From positions 7,459,352 through 7,523,351 of the forward strand of contig MU053934.1 in the NCBI GenBank assembly GCA_013239625.1: 64,000 nt of DNA, given 5' to 3'. The position numbers were made by a program, and so were the translations under genes. The notes below the pieces were generated by a model. The model saw only the letters and a program-made list of their open reading frames with translations. It did not search any database and was not told where the DNA came from. The stretch comes from Lama guanicoe (lineage: Eukaryota). This document shows positions 1,417 to 47,673 of this stretch, piece after piece (position 1 is the stretch's first letter; each line of letters opens with the position of its first letter).

Positions 1417-1906
1417 GAGCCCTGCGCACTCCAGGAGGCCTGCCTCGCCAGACACCGTGGGGCCGGCGGCCTGGGCAGGAGGCAGGTGTGCAGAGACCCA
1501 GCTACTCCTCAGTCCAGGCTCTAGTGCCTTGTAACCACCCCGCCTCTCCTACCAGCCTCCTTGGTAGGACAAGGGGAGCTGGGGGCCGAGGCCTCCTCAC
1601 TCCACTCCCTCTGAGCTGTCAGCTCCCCCTGCGCCACAGCTCTGGCTGCACACACTGACCTCAGATCTCCACCTCCACGCTCTGGCTGGCACCAGTGTGC
1701 TCTCCCACTGTACCCCCTCTTCTTCTGTAAGCCCCCATTCCCACCAGCCATATTCTAGCAGCAGAGGGTCCAGTAGCCCTGAGCCCGAAGGAAGGCCCAG
1801 GGGTCTTTTTGCCCCACCTGGAGAAGTCACAGCCCCTCCCATCCAGGCAGCACGGGGCGAGGAGGGGCTAGGGCCCAGGCCCTTCTTGGGGGTCTTCGAG
1901 GGGTCT

Positions 1907-2032
1907 CAGCAATGGGACCCCGGCGTCAGCTCGCCCTGGGCACTCACCCAGCGATGGGACCCCGGTGACAGCTCGCCCCGGGCACTCACCCAGCGAAGAG
2001 ACCCTGGTGACAGCTCGCCCCGGGCACTCACC
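1907..2032. repeat. Minisatellite, 3 x 42 bp, each unit carrying a copy of the exon-10 splice donor
   Basis: Units at 1907-1948, 1949-1990 and 1991-2032; consensus cagcgatgggaccccggtgacagctcgccccgggcactcacc. Confidence 0.95.
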
Positions 2033-2154
2033 CACACAGTCCTTCTGGTTCCAGTGGAGGCGCCTCCCGGGGGGGCAGACACACGCGTAGCTGCCCTTGG
2101 TGTTGACACAGCCCTGGTCACAGCTCCCGTTGTTCATGCTGCACTCGTCCACAT
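2032..2154 (-). CDS. SCUBE1: SCUBE1 exon 10 (EGF-like 9, calcium-binding type), 123 nt
   Basis: Acceptor ctgtgctcccag|ATGTGGACGAG and donor TGTGTGG|gtgagt. Encodes (D)[40 protein letters not shown], which contains an NGS N-glycosylation sequon. Confidence 0.96.
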
Positions 2155-3615
2155 CTGGGAGCACAGGTAGGAGTGAGGGCAGGAGGGCGGCTGGGCGGGG
2201 CTGGCAGGCGGGGCCTACCCAGGACGGGAGGGCCCTGCATCCCCTGACCCTGACCCCAGCCCGGTACTGTCACCAGCTGCAGACACGCGGCCGCACACGA
2301 GCTCGCGCACACACAGGGCTCCCACAGACACCAGCACACACCCCTCCCCCGGAACCTCGGCGGTTTGCTGAACCTGGGCCGCTGTGCTCGGACTTGCGGG
2401 AGGGCCGAGAAGTGGTACAAAATAAAGTTCCAGTCAGGTCTTGTGGGGCACGGAATGCCCAGCACAGGCCCGGGTCATGAGGCCGTATCTCACTGCGGGA
2501 CCCCGGACAGGCCCTTCCCAGCCCGTTTCCTCTCCCAGGGCGCAGGAAGTCACCTTTAGGGCCCTGCCTTCCTTCGGGTCAAACATCCCCCTGAGGGAAG
2601 CAGCAGGCCCAGGGCAGCTGGTGAGCTGGTGCCCATGTTTCTGGGAGTCCCTCCAGAAGACGCTGCAGCTCCCCCCAGGAGCTCCCCCGCCCCCCAGCAC
2701 CGCCAGGCCTGAGCCTGCCCGACCATCACGGCTGCCCAGCTGAGGAGGTGTGGCTACCACCCCAGGTCCAGGAAAGGGAGGGACTGGAGACCGTGGGGCC
2801 TTTCTTGACTTCTCCACTTTCACACCCCAGGCCTGTACACCTCCACGTCCCATCACCCGTGGATCCTACATACACCTAGACCTTCCCTCTCCCACATCCC
2901 TCCCACCCTGCCAGAGCCAGCAGCTCTCACTCCCCTGTCTGGAGCCGTGTCCTCACCGGCCCTGGGTTCCACTCTCCTAAAGGTGGCAGCCAGAGGGATC
3001 TTGTTACATGACCTTGACTACGTCACACCCCTGCTTAAACCCTCGGATGGTTTCTCATCGTGCTGGGAATAAAACCACAAGTCCCCTGGGGGCTCACAGA
3101 GCCCTGTGTCCCTTCTGTCACCATGCGCCCCTTCCTTCATGGGGCTGTAGCCCCACGGGCTGCATCTCGGTCCCTCTGTGCTCCCTCTGCCTCAGTGCCT
3201 CTGCACACGCTGAACCCTCTGGCACGCTTCCCCTCATCTTGACCCAAACCGTCCTCCTTTAGGATCCCCCCATCTTCCCCACACTCTGCCCTTCTCTGTT
3301 GTCACCCCCTCCCACTGGAATGAACTGGTTAAGGGATTCTCTGTGTAGCCGTCCTCCCTTCCAGACTGGGATTCCCCAGCAACTGCTGTTCACAGGCCTG
3401 TGCCCACAGGCTTGCTGAGGCCTGGCACCCAGGGGATACTTTCTGCCCCTCCCCCCATCCTCCTGCCTGGCCCTTGGCTGAGCCCCTCCCCCCACCAGTC
3501 CCTCCCAGGCCCGTCAGAGTCAAGGTCAGGGGCGGGGTGTGGGGTACAGTGCAGGTGGCCATGTGGCCGGCGCGTGCCTCTGGGGGGAGGTGGCCCTGGC
3601 GGGCGAGCTGCAGAC

Positions 3616-3732
3616 CTCCGCAGTGGGTCGTCCCATAGAGCGTGTAGCCGCGGTGGCACAGGCACTGGAAGCTGCCCGGGGAGTTGATGCAGACGTGGTC
3701 GCAGGTCCGCTCGAAGGAGCACTCGTCGATGT
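3616..3732 (-). CDS. SCUBE1: SCUBE1 exon 9 (EGF-like 8, calcium-binding type), 117 nt
   Basis: Acceptor gtggccaccag|ACATCGACGAG and weak donor TGCGGAG|gtctgc. Encodes (D)[38 protein letters not shown]. Confidence 0.95.
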
Positions 3733-6195
3733 CTGGTGGCCACAGGGAGACAAAGTTTGGGAGAGGTTTTGGGGTGTGGTGGATGGCATGGCCTGTCACT
3801 ACTCAGTCACTCAAAAGACATCTGGGTGCAGACAGTCCCGGGCTGAAGGCTCAGTGCACAGCTGACCCACAGTAAATGCCAGACTTCCGGTCATTGCCTG
3901 ACTTCCCATTTAGTCTCCATTAACCTCATGTTTCTGGGTTGGAAGCCACCTCACATCTTTTCTGGAGGTGGGCAGGGGAGAAATATTGTGAGAAGGGATG
4001 ATTATGCCATTGTGACAGCTCACACTCTAGTGTGGTTAGGATGGGTATTTCATCCACACCTGCAGGAAACCGACGGGCTTGCCTGAGGATGCCGCCGAAC
4101 TGAGATGTGAAAACAGACCTTGGATGCCGACCGAAGTGTGTTTTCCCATCACCCCAAGATGTCTCTTGAGAGAGTAAGGAAAACAGCACAGATAGAAAGG
4201 GGGTTAGGGGGTAATATGCTACCCACAAGGAATAACAAAGCAGCCTTGACAGTACATGAAATTTGATTCTGACCACCCTGGCAGCCAGGGTAAAAAGGGA
4301 AAGAGGGAAGGTCACAGAGCACTTGTCACTGGAAAGGAGGAAATGGACCACGTGTTCACAGGGGACAAGTCTGTCCTGGCCATAAGTTCTGAGGACAATG
4401 GCTCCTGTGGGATAGTTGATGGGGGTCCTGAGGGCAAAGCAGACATTGATCTGCCTCCCCATGGGCACTGCAGTTGGAGTTCATTCTTTGAATACTTTTG
4501 TTCACGTGACTGCAGATGTACTCGTGACATATGCGTGTTTGTAGTAACATAGCACAAGGAAGGAATCACACTGCATGTGCTCAAAGGAGGATGTGATTCC
4601 TCTGGTGGGGGGGCTGGTCTGGAAAGATCTCATGGTGCTTGTGGCACCTGGGCTAGACCCTGAAGGATAGGGCCAGACTGGAGTGAAGGAAGGAGAGTCG
4701 GGGAGGGGCACTCTAGGCAAAGGCTGGGAGGTGGCAGCACCGGCTCCTCGGGGATCGTGTGGAGCTCAGGGGGGCGGGGGAGGTGTCTGGGGTCCGCATC
4801 CCAAGGGCCTTGAGTGCCAAGCAGGGAAGCTTAGACCTCTCCCTGTTGGAACTGGAGATCCAGGGGCTGTGCTGAAGCCGGGGTTGGGGGGCATGGCCAG
4901 AGCCCCAGGCCTCAGAGAGATGAGTCTGGAGAGGGTGGAGAAATCAGTCAGAGCCCAGAGCAGTCCTGCCATTGCCCCTTCCTCGGCAGCTGCCCGCCTC
5001 TCTCAAGGCAGCAGGGAATGCAAAGTCCAGGGCCTCCCTCACTGCCCACAGAATGCGGTATGGCAGACAGAGAAACAAAGTCCAAGAGCAGAGGAGCCCC
5101 GATCGGGGCCTGCACAGATGCTACACTCCCAGGAGGCCCGAGAGGAAGACCGGGCCAGGTGCCCGACCAGGAATGAAGAGGCTGAGCCCAGGGAGGGGGA
5201 CCGCCTGGCTTGGGTCACGTGATGAGCCCCAGGACAGGCTGGCCCTGGACCCTGCCTTGCCAGCCTCTGCTCTCATCATTTTTGGAGCCCTTGGGGGAGC
5301 ACATCCCTGGCCCCTCAGGGCCTTGTGCTGCCCCAGGCCAGCCTCTGAGTGGCACTAAGAGGCAGAAGCTGCAAGGCCCATGGCCAGATGCAGCCACGTG
5401 GAGATGAAATGACTGGATGACAACAGGGTAGCCATAATGGAACAGAGCCACTCCCTCACCGCCCAGGTCATCCTGGTCCCTCCTTCTGCACATTTCCCCA
5501 AAGCTGTCTCCTTCTCAGGGGCCTCATTCAGCCCCAAAGGGCTCCTTGTGGTCCCTCAAGCCCCTTCAGCCCAACAGTGCCGCTCCCTGGATGGGTCCCT
5601 TCCTTGGCTCCTCCTGGAAGATGCCTATTCATCCTTCAAGCAGTTCACCAATGTCCCTTCCTCTAGAGAGCCTTTCCTGACCACCCTCTCTGCTGCCCAT
5701 CCTCTGGACTCTCCCTGCTGAACTTGTCCTGGGCTGTAATTCTTAGCTTCTGCCCAAATTTCTCCTCCCATTACCCCTGCTCCTGGCAGGCGCCCAGAGA
5801 CCCTGAGGAAGGACTGCTGGCAAGCACCCGCCATGTGCACACCTTCCACCAGGTGGCAGCATCCTGCCTCCGAAGCCACCAGGGGAGCCAGGCAGGACTC
5901 CCTGTGCCACCTGGGACTCGGTGATCCCTCCCTGGGCCTCAGGTTCCCATTCATAGTGGGGACAGGGTGGACTGGGTGGCTTCTGGGGGCCTCTAGAGTC
6001 GCAAAGGACAGGGAAGACAGGGAGGGCAAGAGCACATGCTAGGGACAGAAAAACTACAGCCACCCCCTCAGGCCCAGCCCAGTAGGTGGGCGGCCCCAAC
6101 CCCGGGCTCACCTCCTCCCCTAGCGGGCTGTATGAGCCCCCGAGGGGGGAGGACCCCACGAGGACCAGGGCTGCCCGGGCCGGCTGGCAGCTCAC

Positions 6196-6318
6196 CTTGG
6201 CACGTCCGCTCATCCGTCAGCAGCTTGTAGCCCTTCCGGCAGCTGCACTCGAAGCTGCCCACGGTGTTGCGGCAGAAGTGGTCGCAGCCCCCGTTGTTGA
6301 CCAGGCACTCATTGATGT
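6196..6318 (-). CDS. SCUBE1: SCUBE1 exon 8 (EGF-like 7, calcium-binding type), 123 nt
   Basis: Acceptor ggcccccacag|ACATCAATGAG and donor TGCCAAG|gtgagc. Encodes (D)[40 protein letters not shown]. Confidence 0.97.
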
Positions 6319-8629
6319 CTGTGGGGGCCAAGCGGGTGGGGGAGATGAGGATGGTGGGCTCGGCGGTGGGGGCGAGGGTGGGGGCACTGCAGGACCCCCG
6401 GCCGGGACTCCCCCGCCCTGACTCGCCTGCCGCCCAGGGCCCAGGGCTGCGGCGGGTGCCCCAGCTGAGCGCAGGGGTGGGCTGGGCCCCCAGCCGGGGG
6501 GGTGCGGAGGACGGGCCACGCCGCGCCCAGCATTTGTGTATAGAAGGTTGGGGAGCTGATGTCTACTGTACCCCACAAGACAACAGGGTCGATGACACCC
6601 CGAGCCCTTTCGTTCCGGGAGGCAGGCCAGGGGGCAGTGAGGCCTGGGAAGGCAGGCTGCTTCCCCGCAGGGCAGCGGTGACTCTGGGCAAGCTCCCGGG
6701 CCCTGCAGCCCATGCCCCCTGTCGTAACAGCAGGCTCAGAAGCGCCCCTGCTTGAAGAACAGCGGCAGGAGCCAATGAAATAACACCCCCACGGCACTGG
6801 CACTTTCTCAGCGCCCAACCGCCCTTTCTGAGAGGCAGGTTGGCTGCTCCTGTTCCACTGACAGGGAGACCGAGCCGTGGAAGGTGACGGCTGGCTGAGG
6901 CGCTGTGCCTGGAGGCGGGTGTCCCCGGGCTGCCCGACCTCCCGGCCTGGTTCTTCCTGCTCCCCTCCCAGGGCCTGCCCGAGGGTCTGAGCTGTCTCCT
7001 CACTCAGCATTTCACGGGTTGGGTATGTGCCCTGAAGGTCACCTGAGTGTCCCTGCCAGTCGGCCTCTGCTTGCACACCTGGAGTGACGGGAGCCTCCTC
7101 CCTCACAGCCGGGCCTGCTGGCTGATGCCTCAAAAACTTCCCCTGACCCAGGTGAACTCCCTCCCTCCCCCTGGCCCTGCTCATCTGGGTTCTGCTCCCC
7201 AGGCTGCTGGTCAACCTGGCGGACTGAGTTGTCAGAGACCTTGTCCCTGAGGTGCCTCTTCTTCCTCCAGAGTTCCTCTTGGACCCCGATCCCTGGGACC
7301 CCAGTGCTGGTCACACTCCACGCCCCCAGCCCCGACCCAGCAGCTGGAGACAGAAGTAGATGACTTTCAGGGTGGTGTCACCCTGATTTGGAGGGGGCAA
7401 AAAGAAGTGGTGGAAGAGGCAAGGGCTTCTGCTGTGTTGGCCACTGGCCGCACCATAGCAGAGCTGTTGACTCAGACCCCAGCACCCGCTGAGCCTGGCC
7501 TGAGCGTGAAGCTGGACGCCCCTCGTGAGCAAGGTCAGCCTGTCCCCATTTCACCGCCCCACGGAGGGGACCAGGTCCTGTTCCAATGGCTCCCGTCTCG
7601 GGCCCAGCCTCTCCCCGCGCTGCTCTCTTGACTTGAACCTGCTGAAAAATCCTAAGGCGGCATTCCCACAGAATGCTCCCCAACACAAAACAAAACTCAC
7701 AAAACATGGGGACAATGGGGGGCTTTAAAGAGAGCAAGGCTGAGGCCTGCAGTGGGGCCAACCTCGGGGCCTTTGGGAGGGGAATAGGCACAGGGAGTCG
7801 GGCGGGGGCAGGCCCCAGAGCTGCTTTCCTGCAGAGGCCTGGGCAGGACTGGGCTCTGGGGAACACAGGACCCCCAGTGGGCGGGCCTGTCATCACCTTG
7901 CCCTTGGCTGGCCTCCCAGAGGCACCTTCGCCCCAAAGACCCATTCTGTTTGCATATTCTGATGATATTGGCACCAGGAAGATGGGAAGGGAGGGGAACC
8001 TGAGGTGGCCCCATGAAGAAAGGCAGCCGGGGTGTGTGTGGTTCACCAGACCTGGCTCTGAGTCTGGCTCTGCTGCTCATCGGCTGGGGGTCTTGACCTC
8101 TCTGAACACAGTCAGTGCTCTGTGTGTACACACTGAAGTGACTGCTAAAGACAGGCTTCTCAGCACTTCAAACTCTGCACAGGCTCCAAAGCCCGTACTT
8201 CAGGAGCAGAGCTGCCTAAGGAGGAGCCCACGTGCCAGAGTAAGTATTAGGACCCCTAGTGGTCACTGCCCCTACAGGACACCACCTCCTGCTGGCAGCC
8301 AGGCCAAGCACTTTCTGGCAAAGTCTCATGTGATGGTCCAGACAAGTAGGGGGTCAGATCTCCCCCTTTACAGAGGAGGTCACAGCTCCGAGGAGGAGCC
8401 AGATTTGAGCCCAGCTCCAGCTGCCTCTGAAGAGGGGCCTTCTCCAGGACAGCACGCCCGCCCTGCAGCCTCCAGAGGAAGCAGATGACAAGCCCAGTGA
8501 GGGCTTGTCCAGGGCAGAGGCTTGGGCACGTCCATCACCCCCTCCCCTGGGGACTACGGGAAGATGGGTGAGGTTCAAGCTAAAAGCCCCTGGCTGGAAG
8601 GAGAACAGAGGCCCTTCGCCACTCTGCCC

Positions 8630-8750
8630 CAGCCCGCTCTGTGATCCTGGGCAAGGAAAGGCACCTCTCTGTGCCTCAGGTTCCCCATCTGCAAACTGGG
8701 CTGCTAATAGGCACCTCTCCAGCATCATTCATTAAGATTAAATGTGCAGA
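8630..8750 (+). mobile_element. MIR SINE fragment
   Basis: ctgtgatcctgggcaag...cacctctctgtgcctcaggttccccatctgcaaactggg matches the MIR core. Boundaries are approximate. Confidence 0.65.
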
Positions 8751-11463
8751 TGGGGCTTGCCCCCTCAGGAGTGCCTCAGGCTTTCTGGAACCCCCTAATC
8801 CCATCCCCTTCCCCATCTGGGCAGCTCAGGGGCTGTCATAGCAACCAGACAGGCGGTGGGAGGCATGTTTGCTTGAGGACCAGGCTGATGTAGCCGGCTG
8901 CCTGGGGGTCAGAGTGGGGCAAGCACCCCCTCCCCAGCTCTAGTAAGAGTGTGACGGGCTTGCACAGGGCCTCAGGTTTGTTGGGACCCCCAGTTGGCCT
9001 GCCCCCGCTGAGCCCCACACCTGCCCTGCACCTCTCCAGACAGGCCCCAGGGGACCTGGGCTGTGAGCCCAAGGCTCTAAGACGCCAAACCCTGGGTCTG
9101 GAGGTCGTTTGGTTTCCAGGGTTCCCTGATTTGAAGATGTAAAGATGTTTGTATTATGTAGTTCTAGACTAGTCCCACGATCCTTAAGTTCTAATGTCTG
9201 TGACAATATCCAGACTGCACTTCTCTGCCACTGCCGCCCTGTGGCCCCAGCCACTCTCGCCTCGAGCCGGACCCTGCGAGAAGCCCCCATCCAAACAGTG
9301 AGAGGGACTGACTCAAAATGAAAACCTGGCCTGTGCCGCCCCTGCCCAGTGGCGTCTGGGGCCTCACCGAGGCTTGTGGGATGAAGGGCCAACCCCTGCC
9401 CCGGCCCACCCTCCCCGAATTGCCCCCAGATCTAGGCACACTGGCTGCTTTGGGACCTGAAACCCCAGGCCTCTGCACAGCCGTCGTGTGCTGCTGGAAA
9501 TGCTGCCTGGATTGGAGCCTATTGCTCTGTCCTTCCAGACCTCCCCACCACCGCCCAGGCCTGGCCTCGCTCTCCGGCACCAGCCAGCACCAAGTGCTCT
9601 GCTGTACACGCTTATCTTGGTGATTCTGAAAAATTAAAATGTGTCTTCTTTACTCAGTAGAAGATCCCCGGGGACAAGGAATTTCTGTTTCAGTCGTTTC
9701 TGTGCCCCTAGCACCTGTACATGGGAGAAGCCCAGAAAACCCATGTGGTACATGAGTGACCAAGAGGACTTCCTGACTCCAGGACAGTGGGAGTGAGGAT
9801 GTTTGGCTAAAGGCAAAGGGGCAGCTCTGATTAAAGGGCCCAGTTGTTCCAAGAGGAGCCACATGGTGGAAAGATGGTGGGGGCTCAGACTGGTGGGCCT
9901 GGGCTGTGTGGACAGCTCCCTTCAACACCTCCCCCTACCCCAGACTCGCAGTGGGGTGAGGATGGAAGCCTCTCAGGCCACCAATGCATGGGCGGGGGGC
10001 AGTAGCCACAGCACCCTTAGGTGCTCCTCTTGGGCCATGTGATGGCCAAGGTTCCTTTCTGGTCCAGACAGGTTGGCTCCCAGTGCTGAGCTCCTGGTCT
10101 CACGTCAGAAATGAAGCCATGCCCTGCCCTCCTTGTCCTGGGTCAGCGCTGTGCCCTGGGCAGAGGGCAGACTGGCCCGATTCTACCCTCTTCTGTCCTG
10201 GTTGCAAGGGCAACTGGCTGGGTCTGCTGTGACATTGCTGGGCTGGGAGGACGGCTGGGTCTGCGGTGCACGCCTGGCCAGTCCTCCTGGCATGAAGCCC
10301 ATGGGGCAAGGCCGCAGATAGCCCCTGCCCGCCCACTCACCCACCAGGAACACATCTTGCTCTAAGTGGGCCAAGCCAGGGTTACAGAAGGGCTTTATTT
10401 TCAAATAAATAGGCAGAAAAGCTGTTATTTCTGTCAATAATCACTAGGTTCTTCCCAGCAAAGTGTCTGGGAAGGAGAAGTCACACGTTGTCTATTTTTG
10501 CAGGCTTAAAAAAGCCCATCTCAGACTATTTAAAATCTCTCTAAGCCTCCGCTGTCAATATTTTCACCCACTCGGCTCTGGGAGTTCAAGCACCCCTCCC
10601 CTTCCATGCTGGCCGCAAGCCCTGCCCACTTCCTGGCGGGATGGTAGGAAGAGGGCGGCCAGCCTTAGCAGGAATTCCTGGGCTGGCCTGGGGCCACAGG
10701 CAGTGGTGCGGAGGGGTGCACCTCACCCTTCTCAGGGGCTGAGTCCCTGCCCGAGCCCCGCAGCTCAAGGGGTCTGTAACACCCCAGGTCTTTGTCTGGG
10801 CTGGTCCCCCATGCTGCAGGGCTGGCCCCTTCAGTCCTAGGGCTCAGCCAACTCTGGCTTCCCAGCCCCCTTGCTTCCTGTTTCCTGAGGGATCCCCGAC
10901 ACTGCTGAGCACCCTGGAGGCCCTCAGGAAATGTGGGGTGAGGAGGGACAGCGGGCGGGCAGAGAAAGCTCGACCTTCTCTCACTTCCACGCCAGCCCAT
11001 TCCTGACCCTCCCAACCCCTATCTTCTAATTGCAAACTGAGGTCCTTTTGCACCCTTAGTCCTTCAGTTGAGATCCCCCAACAACGTCCCTCCTCCAGGG
11101 ACGAGCATACACAGTGTCCTCATTTTCCCAATGCTGACAAGAAGACAGTCCCGTCCTAGGTGGAGCCCTGTGCCATGCTGCCACCCAGCTGTGCCACACA
11201 GATTACAGCTAAGGTGAGCGCGGGGAAACAGCCCCGCCCCACCCCTGGGAGGCCACGGCCGGCCCAGGAAGCCCAAAGTAGAGAAACACCTTGTTTGTTT
11301 AACCCGGGGTGCAGCCACATTCTTTGATATCAGAACCCCGCTTAAACCTACTGTTATTCAGTGGAAGCAGGGTTCCCCTGAGCACTGTCGGGGAGCGCTG
11401 GTGCTGACTCTCCCTCTTCTCGGCTTCTCCAGCAGAAAAGCAGGTGACACCTGACCATCCTCA

Positions 11464-11925
<462 letters not shown>

Positions 11926-27901: not shown

Positions 27902-28129
27902 NNNNNNNNNNNNNNNNNNNNNNNNNNNNNNNNNNNNNNNNNNNNNNNNNNNNNNNNNNNNNNNNNNNNNNNNNNNNNNNNNNNNNNNNNNNNNNNNNNN
28001 NNNNNNNNNNNNNNNNNNNNNNNNNNNNNNNNNNNNNNNNNNNNNNNNNNNNNNNNNNNNNNNNNNNNNNNNNNNNNNNNNNNNNNNNNNNNNNNNNNNN
28101 NNNNNNNNNNNNNNNNNNNNNNNNNNNNN
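27902..28129. other. Assembly gap (228 N)
   Basis: Run of N. Confidence 1.
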
Positions 28130-46750: not shown

Positions 46751-47463
46751 AAGGAGCTTAAAGAGCATCTAGATGAAGTCTCAACTTTTCCACTGAGGGG
46801 GCCAAAGTCCACCGGACTGGACCCACCCTGGGCCACGCAGTAGCCATTAGTGTCCACACGGAGCCTTGGCTCCCAGTGCCTTGACCCTCAAGTTCCTCAT
46901 TCTTTCCGTCACATCAGGAGGTGGCTTACGAGGCATTGCTGGTTCGGGGGTCACTCACCCACTCAGTCACTTACTCCTACACTTTTGCTGGGCAGCACCT
47001 TTGTGCAGGCCCAGCTCGAGCGCCCACCTGTCACAGGTGCATTTTCAGCTAAGACCAAGTCCTTTGCCACGGCTGCTCACTGGGTGGGCAGGCACCGTGT
47101 ACAGGACAGACGGACAGATGGGCAGACAGAGAATTCAGACTGTGGCTGACTCCTGGCATGTCAGGTGAGAGCAGAGAGGCTGGGCTGGTCTGCCCTCTCA
47201 GAAAGCGGACACGGACACCAGCCTCCCTTCAGCTCCTCACCTCCTGTGCCTTGGCCAGTCCTGCCACTGGGAGCCCCCGGAAAGCTGCCTCTGTGAGGTG
47301 GGGGGGGAGCTTGTCTGATGGCTGTGAGGACCACGTGGCAGTCTGTGCAGACACACGTGGACAGATGTCTGCAAGACTGCAGGTGCCACGGGAAGGTCAG
47401 CATCCCCGGGTGGGAGGGTGGGCCTGGTTTCACCAGCTCTACTTCCCACATCTATTCTGGCTC

Positions 47464-47673
47464 NNNNNNNNNNNNNNNNNNNNNNNNNNNNNNNNNNNNN
47501 NNNNNNNNNNNNNNNNNNNNNNNNNNNNNNNNNNNNNNNNNNNNNNNNNNNNNNNNNNNNNNNNNNNNNNNNNNNNNNNNNNNNNNNNNNNNNNNNNNNN
47601 NNNNNNNNNNNNNNNNNNNNNNNNNNNNNNNNNNNNNNNNNNNNNNNNNNNNNNNNNNNNNNNNNNNNNNNNN
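47464..47673. other. Assembly gap (210 N) flanked by a ~64-bp direct repeat
   Basis: Run of N; 47399-47463 is nearly identical to 47674-47737. Confidence 1.

Follow-up and report, generated by a model that had tools for sequence, protein, structure and literature searches.

Minisatellites that reiterate the donor site of a neighboring exon have been described as a class (Borensztajn et al. 2006, PMC1557585). In intron 7 of F7, a 37-bp VNTR of 5-9 units carries identical donors, and the most upstream site alone is used (PMC1557585). Experiments with F7 minigenes showed that the pseudo-sites are functional and are used only when every upstream site has been inactivated, and that competition was seen only with perfect CAG/gtgagt copies (PMC1557585). 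Conversion of the F7 sites to TGG/gtgagt (consensus value 91) left splicing confined to the most upstream copy, and mutation of the G triplets had no effect on the pattern (PMC1557585). Among other genes, the minisatellites of LMNB2 (100 bp) and PDGF (81 bp) are described as using the authentic site only, and those of IFI6 (6-16) intron 2 and CBS intron 13 as using the authentic site and, constitutively, the next two copies (PMC1557585). The VNTR of ABCA7 intron 18 (25-bp unit) shows canonical use together with a low level of a new isoform that retains one unit via the second copy (PMC5954066).

The choice between repeated donors has also been studied in model pre-mRNAs that carry two strong identical 5' splice sites. 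The intron-proximal copy nearly always wins when the sites are at least 45 nt apart, and the switch to that copy takes place between about 30 and 45 nt of separation (PMC3413131). Two U1 snRNPs can occupy the alternative sites in one complex E, and one of them is then purged (PMC3413131).

We analyzed a window of 64 kb (the whole stretch of DNA, at its full length) in which a single tandem array with a period of 42, 91% matches and no indels was detected by Tandem Repeats Finder. Unit 1 of this array takes in the last 3 bases of the EGF9 exon together with its donor; the exon/intron boundary on the minus strand reads ...GACTGTGTGG/GTGAGTGCCC, the 3' end of the exon being ...TGTGTGG. One donor GT dinucleotide is found per unit, at 2031-2030, 1989-1988 and 1947-1946 of the minus strand. 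The 13-mer TGGGTGAGTGCCC (TGG/GTGAGTGCCC) has three perfect matches in the 64-kb window, at 2034-2022, 1992-1980 and 1950-1938, spaced 42 nt apart, in frame and with no stop between them. With one mismatch allowed, four matches were obtained against 0.47 expected in the window, a number that was reached in none of 100 shuffles. The one-mismatch copy, TGGGTGAGTGACC at 46949-46961 (minus strand), lies deep in another intron and is probably due to chance. A fourth donor was absent from the bases that follow unit 3. The reading frame remains open from the EGF9 exon through all three units up to the stop listed in the Table, and each 42-bp unit encodes one Cys. The original prediction of three identical donors, spaced by 42 bp in an open frame, was correct in all its coordinates and in the peptides of +14 and +28 aa, and its claim of one extra Cys per unit was borne out by the unit translations. 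A minor amendment concerns the limits of the exon, which are those given in the Table.

Table. Positions of the array, its donors and the neighboring features in the 64-kb window
Feature	Position	Strand	Remarks
SCUBE1 EGF9 exon	2032..2154	minus	123 nt, phase 1-1; acceptor AG 2156-2155
42-bp x 3.0 tandem array	1907..2034	minus	Tandem Repeats Finder score 207
Native donor TGG/GTGAGT	2026..2034	minus	cut between 2032/2031; position agrees with conserved orthologue junction V/E
Pseudo-donor 2, same 9-mer	1984..1992	minus	cut between 1990/1989; predicted use would add 14 aa in frame
Pseudo-donor 3, same 9-mer	1942..1950	minus	cut between 1948/1947; predicted use would add 28 aa in frame
First in-frame stop on intron read-through	1868..1870	minus	from the read-through translation
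Six G-runs (GGG/GGGG) outside donors	1918..2021	minus	2021-2018, 2004-2002, 1979-1976, 1963-1960, 1936-1934, 1921-1918

Two features of the array are those of the described class: the first monomer spans the exon-intron boundary, and the exact donor recurs in the monomers that follow. Judged by this architecture, the array in SCUBE1 intron 10 joins the known donor-reiterating class (F7 IVS7/IFI6/CBS/ABCA7 type). The likeness to F7 is close in several respects, since in both genes the first monomer crosses the boundary (with 4 exon bases in F7 and 3 here), every unit carries an exact copy of the donor at a comparable period (37 vs 42 nt), and each unit contains G triplets. The wild-type F7 site is TGG/gtgggt, whereas the engineered F7 site, TGG/gtgagt, is the very 9-mer found in the SCUBE1 array. 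The two arrays differ in that the period in F7 is not divisible by 3 and most of its pseudo-sites would be frame-shifting, and in that F7 has 5-9 near-identical polymorphic units whereas SCUBE1 has three diverged ones. Donor use in F7 is known from splicing tests, and the SCUBE1 array is described here from its sequence.

CBS, LMNB2 and PDGF share the same architecture with SCUBE1 but have other periods and 10-20 units. The minisatellite donors of IFI6 give rise to in-frame protein isoforms, and in this respect IFI6 resembles the outcome first proposed for SCUBE1, in which donor copies yield in-frame isoforms of the protein. IFI6 differs from SCUBE1 in its much shorter unit and its approximately 25 pseudo-sites, and also in that the usage of its donors is documented. 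In ABCA7, as in SCUBE1, the VNTR directly flanks the exon, its first two bases being the canonical donor; unlike in SCUBE1, retention of a unit is out of frame, and the ABCA7 VNTR has at least 12 units, is highly polymorphic and has a length linked to disease risk (PMC5954066).

The identity of the gene was established by comparison with SCUBE proteins. The minus strand carries, in order, seven EGF exons near 58.7, 34.9, 30.7, 11.7, 6.3, 3.7 and 2.1 kb of the window, four of which gave calcium-binding EGF domains (Pfam EGF_CA, E=2.6e-10 to 2.8e-9). The translation of the EGF9 exon, DVDEC...QKDCV, matched EGF_CA with E=2.8e-9 and FXa_inhibition with E=1.2e-9. Across the 286 aa of EGF3-EGF9, identity was 98.6% both with Chacoan peccary SCUBE1 (P0330) and with wild camel SCUBE1 (P0422), and 97.9% with equid SCUBE1 proteins; the median over 89 proteins drawn from SCUBE1 hit lists was 96.5%. 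Identity to mammalian SCUBE2 was 73-75%. EGF9 itself differs from that of peccary SCUBE1 by one mismatch, and an exact match to the window sequence was absent among the fetched proteins; the SCUBE1 protein of this species itself was found neither among the cluster representatives nor among the cluster members listed. Because identity reaches 98.6% with SCUBE1 as against 73-75% with SCUBE2, the gene that bears the array is, by protein comparison, SCUBE1, and the array-bearing exon is the one that encodes EGF9. The seven exons match EGF3-EGF9 of the orthologues, with EGF9 as the seventh and last exon in the window, an order that fits its being exon 10. The earlier assignment to SCUBE1, EGF9 and exon 10 therefore agrees with both the orthologue identity and the order of the seven exons. 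A match resembling exon 11 was absent from positions 1-1906 of the window; exon 11 and the later exons, which would encode the spacer, the cysteine-rich repeats and the CUB domain, lie beyond it.

In these searches, the exons were used one by one and as separate rows of an alignment, and were never joined. The rows of alignment A1 were the translations of the seven window exons, one mammalian SCUBE1 fragment and one SCUBE protein from a crustacean (shrimp); local simulations comparing alignment designs had preceded it. The search with A1 returned 120 full-length proteins, nearly all of them named SCUBE1. A HMMER search with the 83-aa read-through returned mostly multi-EGF giants, the only SCUBE hits being one SCUBE2 representative from a lizard (P0152) and a few fragments of SCUBE1, and a word search started from P0152 listed SCUBE2 only.

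We noticed several other features of the gene in the course of this comparison. At window positions 2084-2086 (minus strand, codon GCG), EGF9 reads ...GSYACVC..., with A at a conserved position where the orthologues have E in 126 of 132 proteins, D in 3, Q in 2, T in 1 and A in none; from this alignment, the A is a substitution specific to the lineage or to the individual, within a calcium-binding EGF that is conserved. At 3611-3617 (minus strand), the EGF8 exon has the donor G/GTCTGC, which matches the consensus poorly, and the donors of the other EGF exons (GTGAGT, GTAAGT, GTCAGT and GTGAGC) are better. Runs of N are found in SCUBE1 introns at 27902-28129 (228 bases) and 47464-47673 (210 bases). 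The SCUBE1 orthologues come in forms of 988 aa and about 1018 aa, implying that the family has a cassette exon of 30 aa.

We examined the array for properties that could bear on the choice of donor. By our own reckoning, the donor 9-mer can form nine contiguous pairs with U1 when wobbles are counted, making it a strong site. Two G-runs follow each of the three donors, runs inside the donors not being counted. Intronic G triplets or runs are said to help mark exon-intron borders, in work cited in PMC1802585, and the G-runs that follow the SCUBE1 donors may have such a border-marking role. The predicted RNA folding of positions 1860-2080 was no more stable than that of shuffled sequences (z = +1.09), suggesting that no structure singles out or obviously masks one of the copies.

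The three units have diverged from one another in a stepwise manner: of 42 positions, 3 differ between units 1 and 2, 4 between units 2 and 3, and 7 between units 1 and 3. Differences at 3-7 of 42 positions argue for a real, old duplication rather than assembly stutter. If the assembler had stuttered over one true unit, the copies would be identical, and the stepwise differences argue against this. There is also no exact stretch of 31 bases or longer that is common to two units, so that short-read graphs can resolve them. In addition, of the words sampled from positions 1800-11750, 87-95% are present in 14 DNA runs carrying four organism labels, a figure that spans the region and not the array itself; three RNA contig sets hold small shares of the sampled window words. 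The two N gaps elsewhere in the window do point to an imperfect assembly. Taken together, we regard an assembly artefact as very improbable.

Three of the seven differing sites between units are CpG transitions. Five codons differ between the units, four of them non-synonymously and one synonymously, and this codon comparison of the three units gave no sign of coding constraint. On these grounds, the array looks like old, neutrally drifting intron DNA. The three 13-mers have remained intact, with all seven differing sites falling in the other 29 positions of the unit; by our own calculation the chance of this is about 0.075, which is not significant. Selection that keeps the pseudo-donors intact was considered as well and was rejected as unproven at this value.

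We then looked at the same junction in other mammals. A word search with the EGF9 exon and its read-through found 14 short ORFs on DNA contigs of other mammals, all of which run from EGF9 straight into the intron, the closest being P0003 and P0009. The comparison across species is one between in-frame translations of intron starts. Twelve sequences, including the SCUBE1 fragment P0095 and the donkey model P0363, had tails of at least 19 aa, and in 12 of 12 the peptide beginning GE... occurs once and shows no 14-residue periodicity. The read-through of the window itself has a self-similarity of 0.6 at period 14. The intron start GTGAGTGCCCGG, which encodes the peptide GECPG, is common to several of the read-through sequences, from which we conclude that this lineage underwent two duplications of a unit that was ancestrally single. 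From these translations, the triplication is lineage-specific, with one copy present in the other mammals compared.

In the annotated orthologues, EGF9 is joined directly to the spacer (ETGKC...), with V, I, L, M or A before the junction and E or D after it, in 125 of the 132 proteins with a readable junction; the exceptions are one model that reads through into the intron and a few that are aberrant. The human-labelled proteins P0351 and P0421 entered this analysis only as counts in the junction table. A repeat-like insert at the junction between EGF9 and the spacer was found in none of the approximately 160 orthologue proteins and isoforms fetched. Because the other species do not have the array, what the orthologue junctions show is limited to conservation of the native junction. 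The SCUBE1 model P0363 of Equus asinus asinus (964 aa) continues past EGF9 through about 45 codons of the intron (GECPGVAIAG...) before it rejoins a later exon; this isoform either retains the intron or is mis-annotated. P0363 illustrates that models reading from the EGF9 junction into the start of the intron are present in public annotation.

The anatomy of the array, the identity of the gene and the single copy elsewhere are described above. As to the choice of donor, we infer that the native site is most likely dominant and serves nearly all transcripts, with a probability of roughly 0.7. We propose that a 42-bp segment, which took in the last 3 exon bases and the conserved intron start GTGAGTGCCCGG, was most likely duplicated in tandem by slippage or unequal exchange, and that the array then drifted in the manner of ordinary intron. 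As a result, two exact pseudo-sites now lie 42 and 84 nt beyond the authentic 5' splice site in intron 10. The spliceosome most likely picks the most upstream copy and cuts after 2032 in nearly all transcripts; copies 2 and 3 would be cryptic sites that are silent or of minor use, and EGF9 would be joined directly to the spacer in the normal protein. We favor the dominance of the native donor because the same 9-mer, when placed in F7 minigenes, was spliced at the upstream copy only.

Several observations count against exclusive use of the native donor. The 42-nt spacing, the strong match to U1 and the use of the two following copies in IFI6 and CBS are among them, and because the extended forms are all in frame, nonsense-mediated decay would not remove them. 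It is conceivable that donor 2, donor 3 or both are used in at least a tenth of the transcripts of some tissue, adding 14 or 28 aa with one or two extra Cys between EGF9 and the spacer, and that allelic copy number could set the longest insert. The identical 9-mers and 13-mers, the open frame and a period that is a multiple of 3 all speak for such use, as do the intron-proximal preference of model substrates above about 30-45 nt (PMC3413131), the use of the first two pseudo-sites in IFI6 and CBS, and the low-level use of the second unit in ABCA7. The F7 minisatellite stands on the other side, because TGG/gtgagt there gave exclusive upstream use; the insert was also absent from all of the approximately 160 orthologues and isoforms fetched, and the units evolve like neutral intron. 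Moreover, selection would probably disfavor an unpaired Cys beside a disulphide-rich EGF, and three units with 7-17% divergence would be a poor substrate for frequent change in copy number. We consider substantial use of donors 2 and 3 unlikely.

The two bodies of work on repeated donors lead to opposite expectations for this spacing. The original prediction had relied on the rule that the intron-proximal copy is often favored; this part holds for artificial substrates (PMC3413131) and does not hold for natural minisatellites, in which the upstream site is chosen (PMC1557585). The substrates of the Eperon laboratory resemble SCUBE1 in having identical strong sites and one acceptor, and 42 nt is within the range tested, but they are artificial globin/adenovirus constructs and their outcome is opposite to that of the natural minisatellites (PMC3413131). 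The 42-nt donor spacing of SCUBE1 falls inside the transition between about 30 and 45 nt.

The extra copies could also serve the native donor without being cut themselves. In such a case, they would act as an intronic enhancer or safeguard that brings more U1 snRNP beside a GC-rich exon, makes the native donor faster, or provides an in-frame back-up, all of which are compatible with dominance of the native donor. In F7, the next copy becomes active once the authentic site is lost (PMC1557585), and two U1 snRNPs are able to bind alternative sites in one complex E (PMC3413131), both of which agree with this role. However, the copies carry no evidence of selection, and the other mammals, from which the array is absent, splice the EGF9 exon normally. 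We think that an enhancer or safeguard function is improbable.

If, as we favor, the native donor is dominant and the extra donors are silent, the SCUBE1 array would be one more natural reiterated donor beside those of F7, LMNB2 and PDGF. Its strong identical sites are 42 nt apart, which is where artificial substrates switch downstream and natural minisatellites do not. Because all of the possible products keep the frame, none would be concealed by nonsense-mediated decay, and together with the spacing this would let the locus discriminate cleanly, in a natural setting, between the 'upstream scanning' and the 'intron-proximal' rules. In its fullest form, the use of the extra donors in some tissues would mean that SCUBE1 is secreted as a ladder, with +14 and +28 aa and one Cys per step, the top of which is set by the allelic number of units; we hold this to be distinctly unlikely. 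If the ladder were true, it would be a natural, in-frame and copy-number-tuned insert in a signalling protein of platelets and endothelium. If the extra donors were used, this species would have SCUBE1 variants with extra unpaired cysteines, which could affect the oligomerisation of SCUBE1 or its platelet and BMP/Hedgehog-related functions.
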